Shown here one piece after another: positions 14,552 through 53,548 of a stretch of 64,000 nucleotides of DNA. The position numbers were made by a program, and so were the translations under genes. Every line of letters begins with the position of its first letter. Position 1 is the stretch's first letter. The stretch spans positions 124,001-188,000 of IMG/VR virus record IMGVR_UViG_3300046003_007892; one strand, 5' to 3'. The notes below the pieces were generated by a model. That model worked only from the letters and a program-made list of their open reading frames with translations. It ran no database searches and was not told the DNA's origin.

Positions 14552-15124
14552 ATGTCTGCTCTGAACCTCAAGCCCACTTTCACCGACCGCGAATCCTACA
14601 AGGCCTGGATTGCCTCGTGGCGGGCCGCCTACCGCGAAATGTCCCAGGACATCCGCACGCGGAAATACAAGCTCAAGGACGCCCAGCGGGCCGAAGAGAG
14701 CAACGCCGGAACCCTTCAGGCCCAGCTTCGTCAGCACCGCCACATGGCGGCCAAGATGATGATGCTCCGTGAGGAGGCCACGCAGCGTCGTGACCGAATC
14801 CTGGGCATGCACAAAGCCCTGAAGGAACAGTTCGACTCGTTCCCGCTCGACCTCGGCACCTGCAAGAACGTCGATTTCCACTTCAACAAGGGTCACATCG
14901 AATTCCCCTTCCTGCCCATGTGGGCTCTGAAGGTGAAGGGCCAGACCTTCTACGTCCACAACATCGAGTCCGAGGCTCCGTGGAATACCCACGAGCGTTC
15001 CTCGGGTTCGACCAAGGGCGTGCTCCGCTTCAAGAAATGCAACATCGTGATCGATCAGTCCGGCACTGCTCGCATCACGGAGGCCGTCGATTTTTTCGTT
15101 GACGAAATGGCGGAGGCAGCATAG
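14552..15124 (+). CDS. Hypothetical protein
   Basis: AAAGGA SD; FHFNK...PMWALKVKGQTFYV...TKG; ends TAG GAG TAA. Confidence 0.8.
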   Translation: MSALNLKPTFTDRESYKAWIASWRAAYREMSQDIRTRKYKLKDAQRAEESNAGTLQAQLRQHRHMAAKMMMLREEATQRRDRILGMHKALKEQFDSFPLDLGTCKNVDFHFNKGHIEFPFLPMWALKVKGQTFYVHNIESEAPWNTHERSSGSTKGVLRFKKCNIVIDQSGTARITEAVDFFVDEMAEAA

Positions 15125-15417
15125 GAGTAAAGGACTGAGAGTGTCTTGGAGGCCGAGACCGCATTCTGGAACTAAGCGACTTCCCGCAAGGGACGCTCCA
15201 GATGCCCGAACGCTAGCCAAGTAGTCCTCCAAGCGGAGGCAAGAAGTGGGCGCACATCCTGCCGCACTCTCTAGACCCGGCGACGGGTCGAGGTAGAAGC
15301 TCTGAAGCACAAGGAAATCCTCTCGGGGATAGTGTGCCCTCGGAATTGGCGGCTCTTAGCGGGGTCGTCATGTAGCCGGGGAGGTATGGAGGTGAAAATC
15401 CCCCTGAGCATCTATTA
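15125..15417 (+). ncRNA. Unidentified ~290-nt structured RNA with predicted pseudoknot
   Basis: GNRA hairpins (tccc-GCAA-ggga, gacccg-GCGA-cgggtc, ggt-GAAA-atc); crossing helices 15131-36/15223-28 and 15137-44/15264-71; no plausible ORF. Confidence 0.7.
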
Positions 15418-15418
15418 C

Positions 15419-15487
15419 GCGCCCGAAAGGCCTATCCTGGGCTTCTAACCCCCAAGGGTGAGGTTTCGATTACCTCCGGGCGCACCA
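15419..15487 (+). tRNA. D-armless tRNA-like element; anticodon CUA by register (UCU alternative)
   Basis: Acceptor GCGCCCG/CGGGCGC+A+CCA; T arm GAGGT-TTCGATT-ACCTC; anticodon stem TGGG/CCCA; only 12 nt replace the D arm. Confidence 0.7.
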
Positions 15488-15494
15488 TTTTGAG

Positions 15495-15530
15495 GAAAGG
15501 CGGGGACCAGCGGGTCTCCGCCTTTCTTTC
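15495..15530 (+). terminator. Strong hairpin, probable terminator
   Basis: GAAAGGCGGGGACC-agcg-GGTCTCCGCCTTTC then TTTC. Confidence 0.75.
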
Positions 15531-15654: not shown

Positions 15655-15730
15655 GCGTCGTTAGCTCAGATGGTAGAGCATCGGCTTCTAACACCGAGGG
15701 TCACGGGTTCGAGTCCCGTCCGACGCGCCA
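15655..15730 (+). tRNA. tRNA with CUA anticodon (amber suppressor candidate)
   Basis: 76 nt; D stem GCTC/GAGC; anticodon stem TCGG/CCGA with C31-A39 mismatch puts CTA at 34-36 (15688-15690); T arm ACGGG/CCCGT; G73, encoded CCA. Confidence 0.85.
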
Positions 15731-15783: not shown

Positions 15784-16371
15784 ATGCAAAATAGTAATGT
15801 CTCTTTGGTCCGAGCAGATGGCTCGCCCCGCATCCGCGTCAACCTGGACGTCGATGGCGTCATGTGTGATTTCGATGGCTGGTGCCGCACCAACTACGGT
15901 GGCGGCTCGCGCGAACTCTCGTTCGAAAACCCCGATGGCAGCATCCTGACTGGCGACGAAGCCCTGTGGGCCTATGTCGATCAGCACCCGGAGTTCTGGC
16001 TCGACATGCCGTTCTTCTACGGTGCCGACGAAATCATGGACATCTGCCGCCCCTACGGCGTCCGGTTCCTGACCGGCTGCCCGCGCGATGAGAATCGTTT
16101 CGCTCGCGCCTCGGCCGAAAAGGTCCAGAAACTGAACGGCAAGTTCCCCGGCATCGAAGTCGTCACGTGCTGGTCGAAGCACAAGATGCTCCACATGCAG
16201 GAGCCCGGCGACATCCTGGTCGATGATTTCATCGCCAACATTCGCCGCTGGGAAAAGGCGGGCGGCTGCGCGGTCTACTTCAAGACCCACAAGCAGGCCG
16301 TGTCCGATCTCCGTTCGGCTCTGGCTCGTCAGTTCCCCGACATCAAAGCGGGCGAGCGCGTCTGGGTGTGA
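15784..16371 (+). CDS. HAD-family 5'(3')-deoxyribonucleotidase-like
   Basis: NLDVDGVMCDF, FLTG, ILVDD...N...W..AGG. Confidence 0.88.
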   Translation: MQNSNVSLVRADGSPRIRVNLDVDGVMCDFDGWCRTNYGGGSRELSFENPDGSILTGDEALWAYVDQHPEFWLDMPFFYGADEIMDICRPYGVRFLTGCPRDENRFARASAEKVQKLNGKFPGIEVVTCWSKHKMLHMQEPGDILVDDFIANIRRWEKAGGCAVYFKTHKQAVSDLRSALARQFPDIKAGERVWV

Positions 16372-17055: not shown

Positions 17056-17146
17056 GCGAGGGTGCCAGAGCATTCAAATGGGCCGGACTGCAAATCCGGT
17101 GGAGCCAATAACTCCTACGAAGGTGCGAATCCTTCCCCTCGCTCCA
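17056..17146 (+). tRNA. tRNA-Cys(GCA) with long variable arm (class II / Tyr-like scaffold)
   Basis: Acceptor GCGAGGG/CCCTCGC, U73, CCA; CCGGA-CTGCAAA-TCCGG; V-arm GGAG-ccaataa-CTCC; T arm GAAGG-TGCGAAT-CCTTC. Confidence 0.88.
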
Positions 17147-17164: not shown

Positions 17165-17641
17165 GTGAATGTCGTAGACGAACACGAATACGGCGACGAC
17201 GGCTACCTTCTCGAAATTCGCGACTGGTGGGGCGGAGAAAGCATCGGTGCCTTCGGTCATATCCCCATCAAGGAAGTCGCCACGCAGGCTCGGCGCGACG
17301 GTAGGTCGTTCGGCTCCCAGGTTCGCGACATCCGTGCATCGGAAGGCTACTACCTGAAATCCATCAACTACGGCGCCTACCATGAACTTCGAGTTGAGTT
17401 CGAAGGTCGGGCGGGTCGCCGGACCATAACCTTGGCTGAAATCTCGGACGCCGTCTACCGCACGTTTTTGGAGTTCAGCGTTTCGTTCGAGAAACCTTGG
17501 ACGTCGATGGTGGTCAGAGCCAGGAACAAACTCCCGGAAGGCTTCATCGTTGGTTTTCAGAGCGACGCCGACCTGACCAAATACATCATGATGCTGGACG
17601 CCGCGATTGCCAGCCTGAACAAACCCTTTATAGTCAAGTAG
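17165..17641 (+). CDS. Hypothetical protein (small-family motif at C-terminus)
   Basis: GGAG SD, GTG start; [16 protein letters not shown]. Confidence 0.7.
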
Positions 17642-17649
17642 GCCCCAAG

Positions 17650-19596
17650 ATGAGCAAGTATCGCACCCACACCTGTGGCAAAGTAGACAAATGGACCGCT
17701 GGCGTCCGGGTCAAGCTCTCCGGCTGGGTCCATTCGCGTCGCGATCACGGTGGCCTGTGCTTCATCGATCTCCGGGACAACTACGGCATCGTCCAACTCG
17801 TCGCCCACCCCGAGAGCCCCGCTTTCGCTATCCTCAACGATGTCCGCCTCGAAAGCGTGATCTGCGTCGAGGGACCGGTGATTATGCGGGCCAAGGAACA
17901 CGTCAACGCCAATCTGGCTTCCGGCGAGGTCGAGGTTCAGGTCATGGCCTGCGAAGTTCTCAGCGAAGCCGAACCCCTTCCGGTGCCGGTCGTGCCGCCG
18001 CGCAACAAGGAAGGTGAGGAAGTCCTCTACCCGGAAGAGCTTCGCCTCAAGCACCGCTATCTCGACCTCCGCCGTGACGCCCTGCACCGCAACATTCTCC
18101 TCCGCAGCGACGTCATCGCTCATATTCGCGAGGGCATGATCTATCAGGGATTCCGGGAGTTTCAGACCCCCATCCTGACCGCCTCTTCGCCCGAGGGGGC
18201 GCGGGACTTCCTGGTGCCCTCCAGGGTCCATCCGGGCCAGTATTACGCCCTCCCGCAGGCCCCGCAGCAGTTCAAGCAACTCCTCATGGTCGCGGGCTTC
18301 GACCGCTATTTCCAGATCGCTCCCTGTTTCCGCGACGAGTCCGCGCGTGCCGACCGCAGCCCTGGTGAGTTCTACCAACTCGACATCGAGATGTCGTTCG
18401 TCGAGCAGGACGAAGTCTTCGCTGTCGCCGAAAAGATTCTGTCGAGCACCTTCGAAAAGTTCGCCCCCAAAGGCATGACCGTCGATCAGGCGCCCTACGT
18501 CCGTATTCCCTACCGGGAATCCATTCAGCGTTTCGGCTCCGACAAGCCCGATCTCCGAAACCCTCTGGAGTTCCGTGACGTCACCGAAACTTTCCGGGAC
18601 GGTGACTTCCCGTTCTTCGCCGACATGATCGCCAAGGACCCCGAGGCCCGCGTCTGGGGCATCGTGGCTTACGACAAGCAGTATCTGCAAGGCCTGCACG
18701 ACCCTCTGCTCCCCGAAGGCTATCCACTGGTCACGTCGGGTTTCTGCAAGAAAATGGACCAGTGGGCCAAAGACGAGGGACGGGGTCTGGCTTATATCCG
18801 CTACGCCGACGACCCCTATGTCGATGGCGTGACCCCCTATGCCCATCGCCCGCATGGGCCGGTGGCGAACAAGATCGGCGAAGACGCGGCTGGCAAGATC
18901 GGCCAGGACTTCAACATCCTCGACGCCAACGAGTGTGCCATCTTCTTCGTCGCGGGGCGGCCGGATGAGATGTATAAGTTCGCCGGACTGGTGCGCACCA
19001 AGCTGGGAGAAGAACTCGACCTGATCGAGAAGAATGCCTTCAGGTTCTGTTGGGTGGTTGACTTTCCCATGTTCGAACTCAACGACGAAGGCCGGGTGGA
19101 TTTCTCCCACAACCCCTTCTCGATGCCACAGGGCGAGATGGACGCTCTGGAGAACCAGAACCCGCTCGACATTCTCGCCTATCAATACGACATCGTCTGC
19201 AACGGCATCGAACTCTGCTCGGGCGGCATTCGGAACCACAAGCCGGAGATCATGCTCAAGGCTTTCGAGATCGCCGGGTATGGGCCCGAGATTGTCGAGC
19301 AGCAGTTCGGCGGTATGCTCAATGCTTTCCGCTACGGGGCTCCCCCGCATGGCGGCATGGCGCCCGGTATCGACCGCATCGTCATGCTCCTGGCTGGTGA
19401 GGAGAGCATCCGCGACGTCATCGCCTTCCCGCTCAACCAGCAGGGCCAGGATTTGATGATGAACGCGCCCGCGCCGCCGACCGAGAAACAGGTTCGGGAA
19501 CTCGGCCTGAAGGTTCGTCTCAAGGATGGGCCGCACCTCATCGACGGCAAGACCGCAGACGTCAAGAACGGCGTCATCACGGTGGTGCAGGGGTAG
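17650..19596 (+). CDS. aspS: Aspartyl-tRNA synthetase, probably non-discriminating
   Basis: YRTHTCG, RRDHGG (His at the ND position), [35 protein letters not shown]. Confidence 0.98.
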
Positions 19597-21972: not shown

Positions 21973-22287
21973 ATGGAATGGTTCACCGAAAAATATGCAG
22001 CCCTGATGGCCAACGAAGTTTTCGTCTCGTTGGCCATGAGCGTGATCGCAGCCGTTGGCTCCACCATGCTGGTCGTCATGCCCCTCCTGGTCTGGTGCGC
22101 ATGGCGGGTGCGGAAGCACATGGCCGACATGGTCAACTGGGACGTCGTCCGCGTCGTCACCACGCAGGCCCACGAATATCAGATTCATCGAACCACCGGC
22201 AAGCGACGTGTGACCTCGCGTCTCATCCCCGTTCCGCCCATCGACAAAGACTGGCTGGCCGGTCGCACGGAGAAACTCCATGACTGA
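21973..22287 (+). CDS. Hypothetical membrane protein
   Basis: One TM segment; upstream TTGACA promoter. Confidence 0.65.
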   Translation: MEWFTEKYAALMANEVFVSLAMSVIAAVGSTMLVVMPLLVWCAWRVRKHMADMVNWDVVRVVTTQAHEYQIHRTTGKRRVTSRLIPVPPIDKDWLAGRTEKLHD

Positions 22288-22960
22288 CGCTCCAATCAAG
22301 ACGGCGGCCGAAATAAGCCGCGAGTATCGTCGCAGCCTCAACAAATGGCAGATCGCTTTTCTGTATCTGTTCTGCGCTTGCGCCATCGCCTTCCTTGTTG
22401 TGATCATCGCCGCCGTGAACGGTTTCCTACCGGAATCGTATCTCAAGACGGCGGTCGAGACTTTTCCGTGGGTCATCGGGCCGATCTTTGGCGCCATCAT
22501 GGTCTTTCAAACCATGAGCATCATTGCCGAAGGCAAAGCCTTACTGGCGAGAGATGTGCGCATCGCCGCCCTGATGGCCCGCCGCTACAAAATCTACACA
22601 GTGGTCTCCCGTGAGGCCATGGCCAAGATGGGCGACGAGGTCGGCAAGATGTTCGCACAGGGCGGACACGCCGCCCTTCATGCTTGGTGGGATTCCTTCA
22701 CTCGCTTCCCCCTGTTTGCTAAGGCGTACAAGGACAGCCAGCACGCTTTCAAGATCACTCTGGTCGTGGACACCGATGCGGAGCTTGAGGCCCTCTACGA
22801 GGCCTTCCAGCCGATTTGCGGGGTATCCCTGGTTCGAGACGCCGGGTTCACCGTTTTCAAGGAGCCCACGATCACCTGTTTGGGCATCGGCCCCATCGCC
22901 GACGAGGACCGGGGTGCGCTGGCCGACCTGAAGACCCTGAGGCCCGCCAAGTCGAAATGA
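22280..22960 (+). CDS. Pth2-type peptidyl-tRNA hydrolase with N-terminal two-TM extension
   Basis: GKMFAQGGHA, KITLVV, VRDAGFT, TITCLGIGP; two hydrophobic helices in the first 85 aa. Confidence 0.88.
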   Translation: MTDAPIKTAAEISREYRRSLNKWQIAFLYLFCACAIAFLVVIIAAVNGFLPESYLKTAVETFPWVIGPIFGAIMVFQTMSIIAEGKALLARDVRIAALMARRYKIYTVVSREAMAKMGDEVGKMFAQGGHAALHAWWDSFTRFPLFAKAYKDSQHAFKITLVVDTDAELEALYEAFQPICGVSLVRDAGFTVFKEPTITCLGIGPIADEDRGALADLKTLRPAKSK

Positions 22961-40603: not shown

Positions 40604-41299
40604 TTAAGCAGTGTAGGTAATATTTGTCAAGTTAATAGGTTTCTCATTGAGGAGATCGTATCTCTCGATCACGCTCTGAACAAACAGGGGAGAACCCTTG
40701 AGGACGCGAAGTTCGTATTCGTTCTCGCCGGTTTCCCAATCCATCCCGGCCATGATGGTGTGGTGCCAGTCAATGTGGGATGGGTCTACGACGGCGTGGA
40801 TGACCACGTTGACGCCTTCGGACTTGAGATCGCTCCAGACGGGTTCGAAATCCCAAGCATGGGGGTCGTAGGTCCAGTAGATGCCCAAGCTGGTCTGGCC
40901 GATGCGCTGGACGGTAGCCGCCCAGTTGGTCGGGACCTTCATGATGCGGTGGATGGAATACAGGCCGGAATGTTTCTCAATAGCGGTCAGGCGTGCGATG
41001 ACCTCGTCGTAGCGATTGTCGCACCACCACATCGCAAACGCACGGAACTCCGGCGTATCCTGGACGTCGATATCTTCCATGTCCGCGAATTGATCGGGGA
41101 ACGGATAGTTGAAATCACCCTCTCGCCAGTATTCAATCATGCGTGCGCCATTGTCGGAACCCTGGAACTTGCCCGGATAGGCCGCATGCGCTTGATCATC
41201 CCAGAAGAGACCCTGAACGAGGCTGTCCGTCATCTTGGCGCAGATGGCAGCCTTGTCCGTGGCGCCGACGCTTTCCGCGAGCGTGATCAAATGTCTCAT
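40604..41299 (-). CDS. ART-like putative head protein
   Basis: MRHLITLAE; IHRIM, SLGIYWT, ENEYEL. Confidence 0.65.
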   Translation of the reverse strand: MRHLITLAESVGATDKAAICAKMTDSLVQGLFWDDQAHAAYPGKFQGSDNGARMIEYWREGDFNYPFPDQFADMEDIDVQDTPEFRAFAMWWCDNRYDEVIARLTAIEKHSGLYSIHRIMKVPTNWAATVQRIGQTSLGIYWTYDPHAWDFEPVWSDLKSEGVNVVIHAVVDPSHIDWHHTIMAGMDWETGENEYELRVLKGSPLFVQSVIERYDLLNEKPINLTNITYTA

Positions 41300-42525
41300 C
41301 GGAACTCGTAGGGACGCAGTCCCGAGAAGAGTTTCTTGAAGGCCGGGTTGGCGAGCATCTGAGCGGCCGAGTGCTTCGGCACGTAGACGAACACGTCGCC
41401 GGTCGTGAAGAAGGCCATCTTGGAAGTTCCGCCGATTTCGCCCGCCGCATCGCCGAGGAGTTTGTCGAAGTCCGTGGCGGCCATGAAGGGAGCAACGGTG
41501 GTGATGTCGTCGGTCATCTGACGGTAAATCTGTTGGTGGATGGCTGAGTTGGCGTCCCAGATATAGACCGACGCCCCGAACGTGACGCCACGGACGAGGC
41601 CGTATTTGGCGTTAGCGATGAGGCTCCTGGTCGTGTTCGGTGTGGGGTCGATATGAACGATGACTTCGCGGTCCCGGACATCGAACTTCTCCATCCGTTC
41701 CGTCAGGGGGCGAGCCGATTTTCGCAACATCAAATCGCTGTCGGCGTCGAACTCAAATCCGAGACGTTCATACCAGCTTTCAAGATCGATCTGGCCGAGC
41801 GCATTCGTGTTGTCGTCCTCGGCGTTTCCGAACTCGACATCCGATCTAGGGAACAACTCCAGGTCCACGCTGAGTTGATCAGCCGTCCGCATAAGGTCGG
41901 TCATGATCTGGCGACCCTTCCCATCATGGCGTTCGCCAGCCGGAACATGGAGCCATCGAATTTCTACGGTGTCGTGGTTGAGCGCAATGAGCTTCAGGTT
42001 GCTGCGGTGATATTTTTCCGCCATCGCCTTGATGAGCGCAGCAGCGTTGCCGGTGTTCTCGATCAGGGAGCGTTTCATCTCCTCAGAGACGTCGATGATG
42101 CGCGGATTGAACATTCGCTGGAACGCCGGGTTGCCCATCAGGTCGCCCTCGGCACCAGCGGCGACATAGAAGAAACCGACCTCGGGGTCTTCGATGAAGG
42201 TGAAGAAGTTGGCCTTCTCGTATTCCCGACGCGCATCATCGACCACCGTTTGGAGATCAAAGCCCATCATGAACAGGCGGACCTCGTGGAACTGGTCTGT
42301 AACCTGACGCCAGATGTCGGCGTGGATAGCCTTGCTGGCATCCCAGAAGAAAATGTCGTTGTTGACCGCAAAGCCACGCACCATGCCGAACTGCGCATTG
42401 GCCAGCAGGGCTTCCAGCGTGTTCGCGGTTGGATTGCTGTGCACGACAACGTCGCGGCCACGAACATCAAACTGTTCGGCGCGCTCCGTGAGGTCGGACT
42501 CAGCGAGAGATATGAACTGACGCAT
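41296..42525 (-). CDS. Putative head polyprotein: repeat domain - GNAT - repeat domain
   Basis: MRQFISLAE; WLHVPAGERHDGKGRQIM...WYERLGF (GNAT); two copies of LTER..FDVR.R.V.VH..PT.NT...L.ANA..G.VRG. Confidence 0.78.
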   Translation of the reverse strand: MRQFISLAESDLTERAEQFDVRGRDVVVHSNPTANTLEALLANAQFGMVRGFAVNNDIFFWDASKAIHADIWRQVTDQFHEVRLFMMGFDLQTVVDDARREYEKANFFTFIEDPEVGFFYVAAGAEGDLMGNPAFQRMFNPRIIDVSEEMKRSLIENTGNAAALIKAMAEKYHRSNLKLIALNHDTVEIRWLHVPAGERHDGKGRQIMTDLMRTADQLSVDLELFPRSDVEFGNAEDDNTNALGQIDLESWYERLGFEFDADSDLMLRKSARPLTERMEKFDVRDREVIVHIDPTPNTTRSLIANAKYGLVRGVTFGASVYIWDANSAIHQQIYRQMTDDITTVAPFMAATDFDKLLGDAAGEIGGTSKMAFFTTGDVFVYVPKHSAAQMLANPAFKKLFSGLRPYEFR

Positions 42526-51751: not shown

Positions 51752-53548
51752 ATGGATTTCCTGCCCTCTGCCGCTCTTCGCTCCTGGCCGCATCGCCAAG
51801 CCATCGACGTTCTGCGTCACGTCGTAAAGACGCGCCTGCCGAGTGCTGCTCTGAAGGACGCTATGGCCCTGCTGTCGCAGGGTCGGGTCGAGGAACTCAT
51901 CACTGCGTTCCCGGCACTGTCCGGGCGTCAGGTCACCTTCCAGACCGGCTACGGCCCTTCGGGTGCCCCGCACATCGGCACCTTCGCTGAAGTCGTGCGG
52001 ACCTCGTGGGTCCAGCACGCTTTCCGGCACCTGACTGGAGACCGCATCAAGACTGCCCTCTACGTCGTCAGCGATGACTTCGATGGTTTCCGCAAGGTTC
52101 CCGATGGTCTCCCGGCGTGGATGGAAGAGGATTTCGGAAAGCCCCTGACGAGCGTTCGGGACCCCGATGACATCTATGAGAGCTTCGGCGCCGCGAACAA
52201 CGCCAAGCTCCGTGCGTTCCTGGCCAACCTCGGCATCGAACATTTCTTCGTCTCGGCGACGCGGGCGTATGACTCCGGCGTTTTCAACGACGAACTCCTC
52301 AACGTCTTCGATCATCACGACGCCATCCTGGACATCATTCTCCCGACGCTTGGCGAAGAGCGGCGCGCGACTTACTGCGCCTTCATGCCCCTCTCGCAGG
52401 AGGGGCGTCTGCTCCAGACCGGAACCCGTCTATCGCAAAACCATCGCGGCTTGCTCCTCTACGATGACCGGTTCGGCTGCCAGACCGGCAACGTGGTCAC
52501 GGATGGCAACGCCAAGCTTCAATGGAAGGTCGATTGGGCCATGCGTTGGGCTGCGCTCGGCACCGACTACGAAATGTCGGGAAAGGACTTGATCGAGTCG
52601 GTCAAGATCGGCAACCAGATCGTGCGCGTTCTGGGCAGCCAACCGCCCGTGCAGATGACCTACGAGATGTTCCTCGACGAGAATGGCGAGAAGATCAGCA
52701 AGTCGCGGGGCAACGGCCTCTCGGTTGAGCAATGGCTCCGCTATGGCTCGCGCGAGGGTCTGTCCTACTTCATGTTCGGCAACCCCACGGCGGCGAAGAA
52801 GCTCCACGTTGGCGTCATCCCACGCGCCGAGGACGACTATCTCGAAGACCTGGAAGCAGTCACGCCGGATTCGCCGTCGTGGCATATCCACCGAGCCGCC
52901 CCGCCCGCGCCGCTCACCACCGAAACCTCCTACGCGATGTTGGTCAACATGGCGTCGGTTTCGCGCGCCCCGGACCCCGGCATCCTCCTCCAGTATCTGA
53001 GCCAGAATCGTCCCATCGCCGAGGAAGAGATCGCCCGCGTCCATGCCCTGGCGCAGACGGTGGTCAACTACTGTGCTGGTGAGGTCTATCCGCACATGAA
53101 GCCCCGCGTGGCGACCAAGATGGAGAAGGTTGCCCTCTACGAATTCGCCTATGAACTCGAACAGATGGCCGATGGCCTCACGGCTGAGGAATACCAGACG
53201 GTCGTCTACGAGGTAGGCAAGACGCGGGGCTATGCGGACGACCTCCGTGCATGGTTCCGGGTCATCTATGAGACCGTCTTCGGTTCCGAAGAGGGCCCGC
53301 GCATCGGAGCGTTCATCTGTGCCATCGGCCGCCTGAACGCCATCTCGCTTTTCAACGGCGTGCCGATGGCTCGCGACCCCTTCATTGGTCGCAACCCCAC
53401 CGAGGTGCGCGCGTGGGAGATCGCCCGCGAGGCGCACGGCCCAGATATCCCGAGCCCGCACGAAGGCATGCCGCCCTCGGTGTGGTGCGCATTCGTGGCT
53501 GCCGCCGAGAAGGAACTCGGGCTGAGCAAGGAAATCGGAAATGCTTGA
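51752..53548 (+). CDS. lysS: Class I lysyl-tRNA synthetase with C-terminal extension
   Basis: TGYGPSGAPHIGT, SDDFDGFRKVP, KLQWKVDWAMRW, GKDL, KISKSRGNG, GPRIGAF. Confidence 0.97.
   Translation: MDFLPSAALRSWPHRQAIDVLRHVVKTRLPSAALKDAMALLSQGRVEELITAFPALSGRQVTFQTGYGPSGAPHIGTFAEVVRTSWVQHAFRHLTGDRIKTALYVVSDDFDGFRKVPDGLPAWMEEDFGKPLTSVRDPDDIYESFGAANNAKLRAFLANLGIEHFFVSATRAYDSGVFNDELLNVFDHHDAILDIILPTLGEERRATYCAFMPLSQEGRLLQTGTRLSQNHRGLLLYDDRFGCQTGNVVTDGNAKLQWKVDWAMRWAALGTDYEMSGKDLIESVKIGNQIVRVLGSQPPVQMTYEMFLDENGEKISKSRGNGLSVEQWLRYGSREGLSYFMFGNPTAAKKLHVGVIPRAEDDYLEDLEAVTPDSPSWHIHRAAPPAPLTTETSYAMLVNMASVSRAPDPGILLQYLSQNRPIAEEEIARVHALAQTVVNYCAGEVYPHMKPRVATKMEKVALYEFAYELEQMADGLTAEEYQTVVYEVGKTRGYADDLRAWFRVIYETVFGSEEGPRIGAFICAIGRLNAISLFNGVPMARDPFIGRNPTEVRAWEIAREAHGPDIPSPHEGMPPSVWCAFVAAAEKELGLSKEIGNA

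Follow-up and report, generated by a model that had tools for sequence, protein, structure and literature searches.

A tRNA-derived element without a D arm in the tRNA island of a lake-water giant phage

A 69-nt tRNA-like element that lacks a D arm was found in the genome of a lake-water bacteriophage, within the 64-kb stretch of DNA analysed here (henceforth referred to as the window; positions 124001-188000 of a 240-kb viral record with an estimated completeness of 45% and a G+C content of 58%). The element is real, non-random and tRNA-derived, and among everything searched it is confined to one phage species. It is tentatively explained, with a confidence that falls somewhat short of even, as the remodelled relic of an A73 amber-suppressor tRNA that is probably transcribed and processed but would not be an efficient decoder. 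The more far-reaching proposal, that the phage uses a natural D-armless tRNA either as a charged suppressor complementing its G73 suppressor or as a selected mimic directed against host tRNA-binding or tRNA-cleaving factors, is considered possible but rather doubtful. Coordinates of all features are provided in Table 1.

The record is common in lake-water metagenomes. It contains T4-type tail-sheath-stabiliser and topoisomerase genes, and its topoisomerase II subunit is 48-50% identical to the counterparts of Sinorhizobium phage Phosso and Agrobacterium phage Atu_ph07, which points to a T4-like giant phage whose host is probably an alphaproteobacterium. A total of 24 standard tRNAs were identified in the 240-kb record by ARAGORN, and the window also encodes a peptidyl-tRNA hydrolase and two aminoacyl-tRNA synthetases, one of them AspRS-like and the other a class I LysRS.

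Table 1 Coordinates of the element, its neighbours and related features. Positions are those of the window unless another record is named by its handle; G000 is the genome carrying the element.
Feature	Location	Strand	Basis or remark
190-aa gene, ends in TAG; syntenic anchor of the tRNA island	14552..15124	+	Homologues P0001-P0046
Leader X, 294-nt non-coding, strongly structured	15125..15418	+	Between 190-aa gene and element
D-armless tRNA-like element, 69 nt	15419..15487	+	Sequence; ARAGORN -ps, -mt; Rfam tRNA 29.2 bits; folds
Likely intrinsic terminator, 17-bp G+C-rich hairpin, then T-rich run	15491..15528	+	Fold of 15125-15530
Canonical amber-suppressor tRNA(CUA), 76 nt	15655..15730	+	ARAGORN; Rfam 57.7 bits
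5'-3' deoxyribonucleotidase-like gene (NT5C type); borders the island downstream	15808..16371	+	PHROG 2643, E 2e-20
tRNA-Cys(GCA), 91 nt, long extra arm, U73	17056-17146	+	Rfam 50 bits; conserved in L055, L057
Class II AspRS-like synthetase, large insertion	17497-19593	+	Pfam E 7e-110
PTH2 peptidyl-tRNA hydrolase	22280-22957	+	
Class I LysRS	51752-53545	+	E 1e-94
Long tRNA-Lys genes	G000 83023-83116, 83131-83217		
Long tRNA-Asn gene	G000 40741-40829	-	
Two short tRNA-like remnants	G000 42207-42268, 42345-42446	-	Outside the window; 290-nt gap between two tRNA-Ile genes
Tandem CUA tRNA pairs	L052:4085-4237, L056:3245-3420, L059:282-438, L060:3324-3489, L142:4422-4573, L143:4457-4622		
Anticodon-less tRNA-like family A	L056:3123-3201, L058:2131-2205 (G004), L142:3116-3196, L060:1177-1253 (G002)		
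Anticodon-less tRNA-like family B	L142:3199-3309, L143:3130-3238, L058:2206-2313, L052:3632-3748		

Structure and authenticity of the element

The acceptor stem of the element (15419-15425 with 15477-15483) is formed by 7 of 7 Watson-Crick pairs, all of them G-C. The place of the D arm (15426-15437) is occupied by 12 nt, compared with the approximately 19 nt expected for a D arm and its connectors, and is followed by an anticodon arm (15438-54) whose stem (15438-15442 with 15450-15454) contains 4 pairs and a C31·C39 mismatch. The anticodon loop, UUCUAAC, presents U33, CUA at 15445-15447 (positions 34-36, counted from the T arm) and A37. A variable loop of 5 nt (15455-59) leads into a canonical T arm (15460-76; stem GAGGU/ACCUC, loop UUCGAUU), and the element ends with A73 at 15484 and an encoded CCA at 15485-15487. 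The perfect 7-bp acceptor, 12-nt spacer, canonical T arm and encoded CCA described in the initial annotation can all be read directly from the sequence.

The element was missed by ARAGORN under default settings. It was called as a 69-nt tRNA(cta) with a 2-bp D stem when the thresholds were lowered (-ps), and as a 69-nt D-loop-replacement tRNA(tct) in mitochondrial mode (-mt). The Rfam tRNA model RF00005 matched the element at 29.2 bits (gathering threshold 29; E 7e-5) in a search of 86 nt, and reported no match to it in searches of the 64-kb window or of 751 nt. The alignment to RF00005 skips the D arm (15 model positions) and leaves CUA in register. It thereby agrees with the earlier description of a D-armless, tRNA-derived element in a bacteriophage and with the earlier placement of CUA at positions 34-36, which is the register preferred by both the Rfam model and ARAGORN -ps.

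A D arm with a 3-4 bp stem and A14, G18, G19 and A21 in its loop is absent, and at best a 2-bp stem can be formed. The 12-nt replacement contains a GG that could meet the T loop. Upon comparison with 170 D regions of giant-phage tRNAs, with one deletion, the best match to the replacement was 8/12, which equals the shuffled null. Two further features were considered as signs of decay and rejected. The U53-A61 pair belongs to a T arm that is found unchanged in genuine tRNA-Thr, Gly, His and Ala genes, including an alphaproteobacterial tRNA-Thr(GGU). The C31·C39 mismatch, already pointed out in the initial annotation, recurs in the canonical suppressor of a relative (L141) and follows the style of the lineage, with C31·A39 at the same place in the neighbouring suppressor tRNA. 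As genuine tRNAs show both features too, loss of the D arm is the only real departure from a working tRNA.

A relaxed scan for an acceptor stem plus T arm returned 1 CCA-ended match across ten random genomes of the same size, corresponding to a chance expectation of about 0.1 such matches per genome or lower; in the real genome, the element was the sole CCA-ended match outside the called tRNAs. Additionally, three more assemblies from other samples (L046-L048) agree without a difference over the entire intergenic region, making four in total. These results speak against a chance look-alike and an assembly artefact, respectively. A host tRNA half left at an integration site was also considered: such halves exist, and a Hyphomicrobiales genome (L126) duplicates the 3' half of a tRNA-Thr with the same T arm. 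The element, however, contains both acceptor strands, perfectly paired, and resides in a T4-like giant phage related to the lytic Atu_ph07. All three explanations are considered effectively refuted.

Four low-depth lake runs contained the same strain at 2-4x and showed no differences, with positions 15382-15519 of the window uncovered by contigs. The contigs stop at 15380/81 and restart at 15520/23 (two runs each), such that the gap spans the element and the terminator. Low coverage of a very stable structure, strain variation and filtering are possible causes, and a hole of this kind proves nothing.

The tRNA island in this phage and its relatives

The element is separated from the upstream 190-aa gene by leader X, which contains only short ORFs (none longer than 52 aa) and has no match to an Rfam family. 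The fold of 15125-15530, comprising leader X, the element and the terminator, has a z score of -3.55. Two blocks of leader X (15304-15326 and 15371-15402) recur between the two tRNAs of another phage (L049:1404-1476). The second block includes a hairpin with the loop UGAAAAU, whose stem differs in L049 by partly compensating changes; as a wider motif, the conserved block gave 0 matches in viral contigs. An intron-split tRNA or a tmRNA within the upstream 294 nt was considered and rejected, as nothing was returned by ARAGORN with introns, by ARAGORN in tmRNA mode or by 3 Rfam E-value searches. Downstream, the terminator hairpin begins 4 nt past the CCA of the element and is predicted as the likely close of the transcription unit containing it; a simple terminator scan did not list this hairpin, which falls just short of its T-run rule.

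The canonical suppressor tRNA at 15655, with G73, a C31·A39 mismatch and an encoded CCA, lies 167 nt downstream of the element. Among paralogues it is nearest to the element, with 66% identity over the 3' 47 nt, and the stem differences between the two are fully compensated. The loop likeness noted in the initial annotation is real, as the 10-mer GGCUUCUAAC around the anticodon is common to both. The anticodon stem and variable loop of the 15655 tRNA are most like those of the phage's own tRNA-Arg(ACG). A tandem duplication of leader plus tRNA was rejected, with only weak collinear matches obtained (E 0.1-0.5). The NT5C-type gene that borders the island occupies the same place in the gene order of L049, L055 and L057.

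The islands of relatives were reached through homologues of the 190-aa protein. Six relatives (L052, L056, L059, L060, L142 and L143; roughly 43-56% protein identity) contain two intact CUA tRNAs side by side, with one A73 and one G73 copy in 5 of the 6 and long variable arms in some copies. Tandem CUA pairs are recurrent in this lake-water giant-phage clade. The A73 suppressors of the relatives all have normal D arms. The phage studied here has one intact G73 copy and the A73 element; L058 has one intact CUA tRNA and a copy of A73 type whose anticodon loop has taken up a 37-nt insertion; L144 has one CUA tRNA in the same slot; and the slot is without a tRNA in L055, L057 and the cultured phages Phosso and Atu_ph07. 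The insertion in L058 forms a hairpin in a copy (L058:2362-2474, G004) whose acceptor strand, GAUUCCG, is the same as in L052, and which ARAGORN reports as a tRNA-Stop(tta) with an intron.

Two relatives share the gene order of 190-aa gene, tRNAs and NT5C around the element. L049, the nearest sampled relative with 65% flanking-protein identity, is without the element; its orthologue of the 15655 tRNA has an anticodon loop collapsed to a tetraloop and no CCA, and its second tRNA has a 6-nt loop. L141 contains the canonical suppressor with C31·C39 and the loop UUCUAAA, flanked by imperfect tRNA remnants. Similar remnants are present in the phage's own genome, where the gap between two tRNA-Ile genes contains two short sequences with acceptor-like and T-arm-like helices that are not called by ARAGORN; CCA is absent in one and out of register in the other. 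These remnants indicate tRNA gene decay inside the phage's own clusters.

Four related phages of 415-608 kb yielded no homologue of the element, whether with BLAST or with a covariance model derived from the element itself, and neither did a structure scan that covered two of these phages in full and part of a third. Pattern scans of viral, metagenome and bacterial collections and a search of 50,697 phage records likewise returned no homologue. Patterns from each of the two flanking proteins, scanned singly against viral contigs, revealed no close relatives, and loci anchored on the AspRS (L022-L028) are without a tRNA island. Two elements in unrelated viral contigs of 46-48% G+C (L008:6760-6826 and L009:6725-6790) were rejected as relatives, their acceptor stems being imperfect and mutually inconsistent. 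They are short, T-arm-bearing, CCA-ended elements just past a stop codon, with the loop CUUCUAACCCC and no D arm; the loop is shared because the search pattern was built that way. Absence in the relatives is weak evidence, since the nearest is only 65% identical in a flanking protein. Free drift in relatives, named in the initial annotation as the mark of a pseudogene, or outright absence from them is what has been seen so far and counts against its reading, with L049 lacking the element and its tRNAs decayed at that place, but L049 is too distant to decide the matter.

The same island in several relatives contains two families of tRNA-like genes in which the anticodon loop is replaced. Members of family A are complete cloverleaves whose acceptor, D and T arms are normal, and 3 of the 4 carry CCA. 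Their anticodon arm has no 7-nt loop and consists of a 7-8 bp stem with a GGAA or GUGAA cap; ARAGORN misreads two members as having 4-base anticodons (ggaa). The covariation of its stems between phages suggests that family A is a conserved tRNA mimic without an anticodon. Family B consists of tRNA-like genes of 108-117 nt with a 31-46 nt insertion instead of the anticodon loop. The insertion contains a long stem that covaries, an asymmetric internal loop in which GGA faces GUUGAA or GUGAA, and a further hairpin. Members of family B are called by ARAGORN as tRNAs with an intron, and the family is conserved in at least 4 giant phages (nhmmer E 1e-21 to 1e-27). As their sequences are read here, neither family can decode, and the stem covariation in both points to selected tRNA mimics in this clade. 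The architecture of the element is the reverse, with the D arm missing and the loop kept. No specific homologue of family A was found in the 240-kb record, and the nhmmer profiles of families A and B matched neither the element nor anything specific in this genome.

Predicted folding and the use of UAG

The lowest-energy fold of the element was predicted at -33.0 kcal/mol, compared with -24.0 kcal/mol for the tRNA-like fold and -28.3 kcal/mol for the best fold retaining the anticodon stem. The acceptor and T helices are retained in this compact four-helix structure. The D replacement pairs with the 5' strand of the anticodon stem in a 7-bp hairpin with a triloop, and a C-run pairs with the variable loop in a second hairpin of 4 bp with a tetraloop, such that the anticodon stem accounts for about 0.08% of the predicted ensemble. 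Relative to shuffled controls, the fold has a z score of -3.6; the z scores are -1.1 to +0.8 for the decayed tRNA sequences of L049, L141 and this phage itself, which have mismatches and no CCA. Selection for the competing hairpin was considered and rejected for lack of significance, since 8-22% of random 12-mers give an equally good fold when put in the D position. The predicted fold argues only weakly against display of the CUA, because random 12-mers do as well at that frequency and because energy models ignore tertiary contacts.

Genes of this phage end in all three stop codons. When TAG was read as sense, the gain in open frame was no greater than that obtained with TAA or TGA (open-frame statistics), and in-frame TAG sites with coding signal on both sides resembled the corresponding TGA and TAA sites. 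The seven TAG cases were rejected as read-through candidates, as they correspond to neighbouring genes or to frames on the antisense strand. The 240-kb record gives no sign of TAG recoding, and suppression looks dispensable. A comparable situation has been described for Xanthomonas phage XacN1, in which two CUA tRNAs and a tRNA pseudogene are present and read-through targets could not be identified (PMC5852040).

Relic, mimic or suppressor

The favoured explanation starts from a pair of amber-suppressor tRNAs located after the 190-aa gene in this giant-phage clade. The element would be a lineage-specific copy, most likely the A73 partner of the intact G73 suppressor downstream, that has lost its D arm and would persist as a relic in an island of continual tRNA gene gain, alteration and loss. 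Because the acceptor/T-arm half, the CCA and the downstream terminator are intact, the RNA is probably still transcribed and would be trimmed by RNase P and 3' nucleases. Because the D arm is missing and the competing fold ties up the 5' strand of the anticodon stem, UAG would probably not be read efficiently. A relic is favoured because the element is unique to one species, because the ancestral state appears to be a suppressor pair, because both relatives with the same gene order show decay at this place and remnants occur in the phage's own clusters, and because suppression is unneeded and an intact suppressor adjoins. Some observations, however, speak against a simple relic. The other helices are intact (7/7, 4/5 and 5/5 pairs), the fold z score sets the element apart from true remnants, and the differences from the paralogue are compensated throughout; of the marks of a pseudogene, D-arm loss and non-conservation are present but uncompensated changes across the remaining stems are absent. 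A D arm erased while the other stems have not drifted points either to one recent complex replacement event or to a D-armless form kept by selection. Furthermore, a D-armless tRNA can be charged and used by the translation machinery of E. coli (PMC11551756).

A functional, non-decoding tRNA mimic, with the intact acceptor/T-arm half and its CCA as the working part, is judged unlikely, though far from negligible. Such an RNA could be an RNase P cleavage mark that sets the 3' end of the structured upstream RNA, a stabiliser of the transcript end of the 190-aa gene, or a sponge for factors that attack or bind the upper half of tRNA, such as CCA-end nucleases, tRNA-modifying toxins, EF-Tu or aminoacyl-tRNA synthetases. 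The perfect acceptor and T helices, the CCA and the adjacent terminator are consistent with this role, as are the very stable compact four-helix fold and the rewriting of the D region with every other helix left intact. The setting also fits, as leader X is structured and partly conserved in L049, covarying non-decoding families occupy the same island of relatives, and the tRNA region of phage T4 likewise yields two stable RNAs of unknown role (PMC3014915). On the other side, the element itself has neither homologue nor covariation, the profiles of the two families do not reach it or anything specific in its genome, its fold stability is not unusual for a G+C-rich context, and no candidate target has been identified.

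A working D-armless amber suppressor, acting as the A73 partner of the G73 suppressor at UAG, is less probable still. Charging would fall to a synthetase of the host or the phage for which acceptor and anticodon suffice, and the phage does encode its own AspRS-like enzyme and class I LysRS. The placement of CUA between U33 and A37 when positions are counted from the T arm, the anticodon arm in the style of the lineage (the 10-mer of the neighbour, and C31·C39 as in L141), the GG that could contact the T loop and the A73/G73 combination that mirrors the suppressor pairs of the relatives all argue for this role, and in E. coli the D-armless mini HisT works with HisRS, EF-Tu and the ribosome (PMC11551756). 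Against it, forming the anticodon stem costs 4.7-9 kcal/mol in predicted folding energy, the element is not conserved outside its species, the A73 suppressors of the relatives all keep normal D arms, no in-frame TAG targets were found, and an intact suppressor lies so close by; the D-armless tRNA in E. coli also needed a PNPase mutation to accumulate (PMC11551756). The specialised suppressor or decoy proposed in the initial annotation fared less well than its structural description, with no homologue outside one species, no in-frame TAG use and a lowest-energy fold that hides the anticodon loop.

To our knowledge, the bacterial and phage tRNAs known so far are all cloverleaves. D-armless tRNAs of metazoan mitochondria, such as tRNA-Ser(AGY), are conserved across animals and have co-evolved with their synthetases, EF-Tu and ribosomes. 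The element resembles them in its 7-bp acceptor, short unpaired D stretch, extendable anticodon arm and normal T arm, but differs in being located in a bacterial phage, in its encoded CCA and canonical T loop, and in not being conserved. The D-arm replacement is recognised by ARAGORN -mt, but neither presence nor covariation was observed in the relatives and collections searched. Apart from animal mitochondria, D-armless tRNAs are described only for one laboratory-evolved E. coli system (PMC11551756), and the earlier statement that such tRNAs are not typical of bacteria stands, as no natural non-cloverleaf bacterial tRNA is known (PMC11551756). That system, mini HisT, is a man-made D-armless tRNA evolved for E. 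coli whose limit was degradation by PNPase and whose in vivo activity required a PNPase mutation (PMC11551756). It shares with the element a bacterial-type D-armless body and was used as a suppressor, the fold being tolerated by the bacterial machinery (PMC11551756), whereas the element is natural.

The tRNA-like domain of tmRNA (RF00023) likewise has an acceptor/T-arm half, a CCA and no true D stem. The features that set tmRNA apart, namely its long connecting helix, its pseudoknots, the reading frame for the tag and G3·U70, are all missing from the element, which carries G3-C70. No tmRNA was identified by ARAGORN -m, and Rfam gave only 6.6 bits elsewhere in the spacer, not on the element. 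The mascRNA (RF01684) is a tRNA-shaped module whose cleavage by RNase P defines the 3' end of the RNA that precedes it. Its model did not match the element, the sole match (17.3 bits) being on the normal tRNA. With mascRNA and with RNAC and RNAD of phage T4 (PMC3014915), the analogy is functional only, as neither sequence nor model matches link them to the element. XacN1 offers a parallel in setting, as it is also a giant phage rich in tRNAs that has two genes of CUA type, lacks identifiable read-through targets and contains one or more defective tRNA copies (PMC5852040). The element differs in not being generally degraded, with only its D arm missing and its other helices perfect.

A functional D-armless phage tRNA would greatly surprise specialists. 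If the element were a D-armless suppressor or mimic, it would be the first natural non-cloverleaf adaptor or decoy of tRNA type in a bacterial translation system and would give phages a new means of reading through stop codons or of opposing host defences directed at tRNA; its expression would mean that molecules of this type are naturally encountered by ribosomes, EF-Tu and a synthetase of bacteria. The evidence so far presents the element as an oddity of a single lineage. As a relic, which is held to be the likelier case, it would provide a clean snapshot of tRNA gene remodelling in giant-phage tRNA islands, and the conserved anticodon-less families of the relatives would be the more interesting objects.

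Several other tRNA genes of this phage are of unusual length. In addition to the tRNA-Cys(GCA) of the window, the same genome contains tRNA-Lys genes of 94 and 87 nt and a tRNA-Asn gene of 89 nt, and long variable arms are unusual for Cys, Lys and Asn tRNAs.
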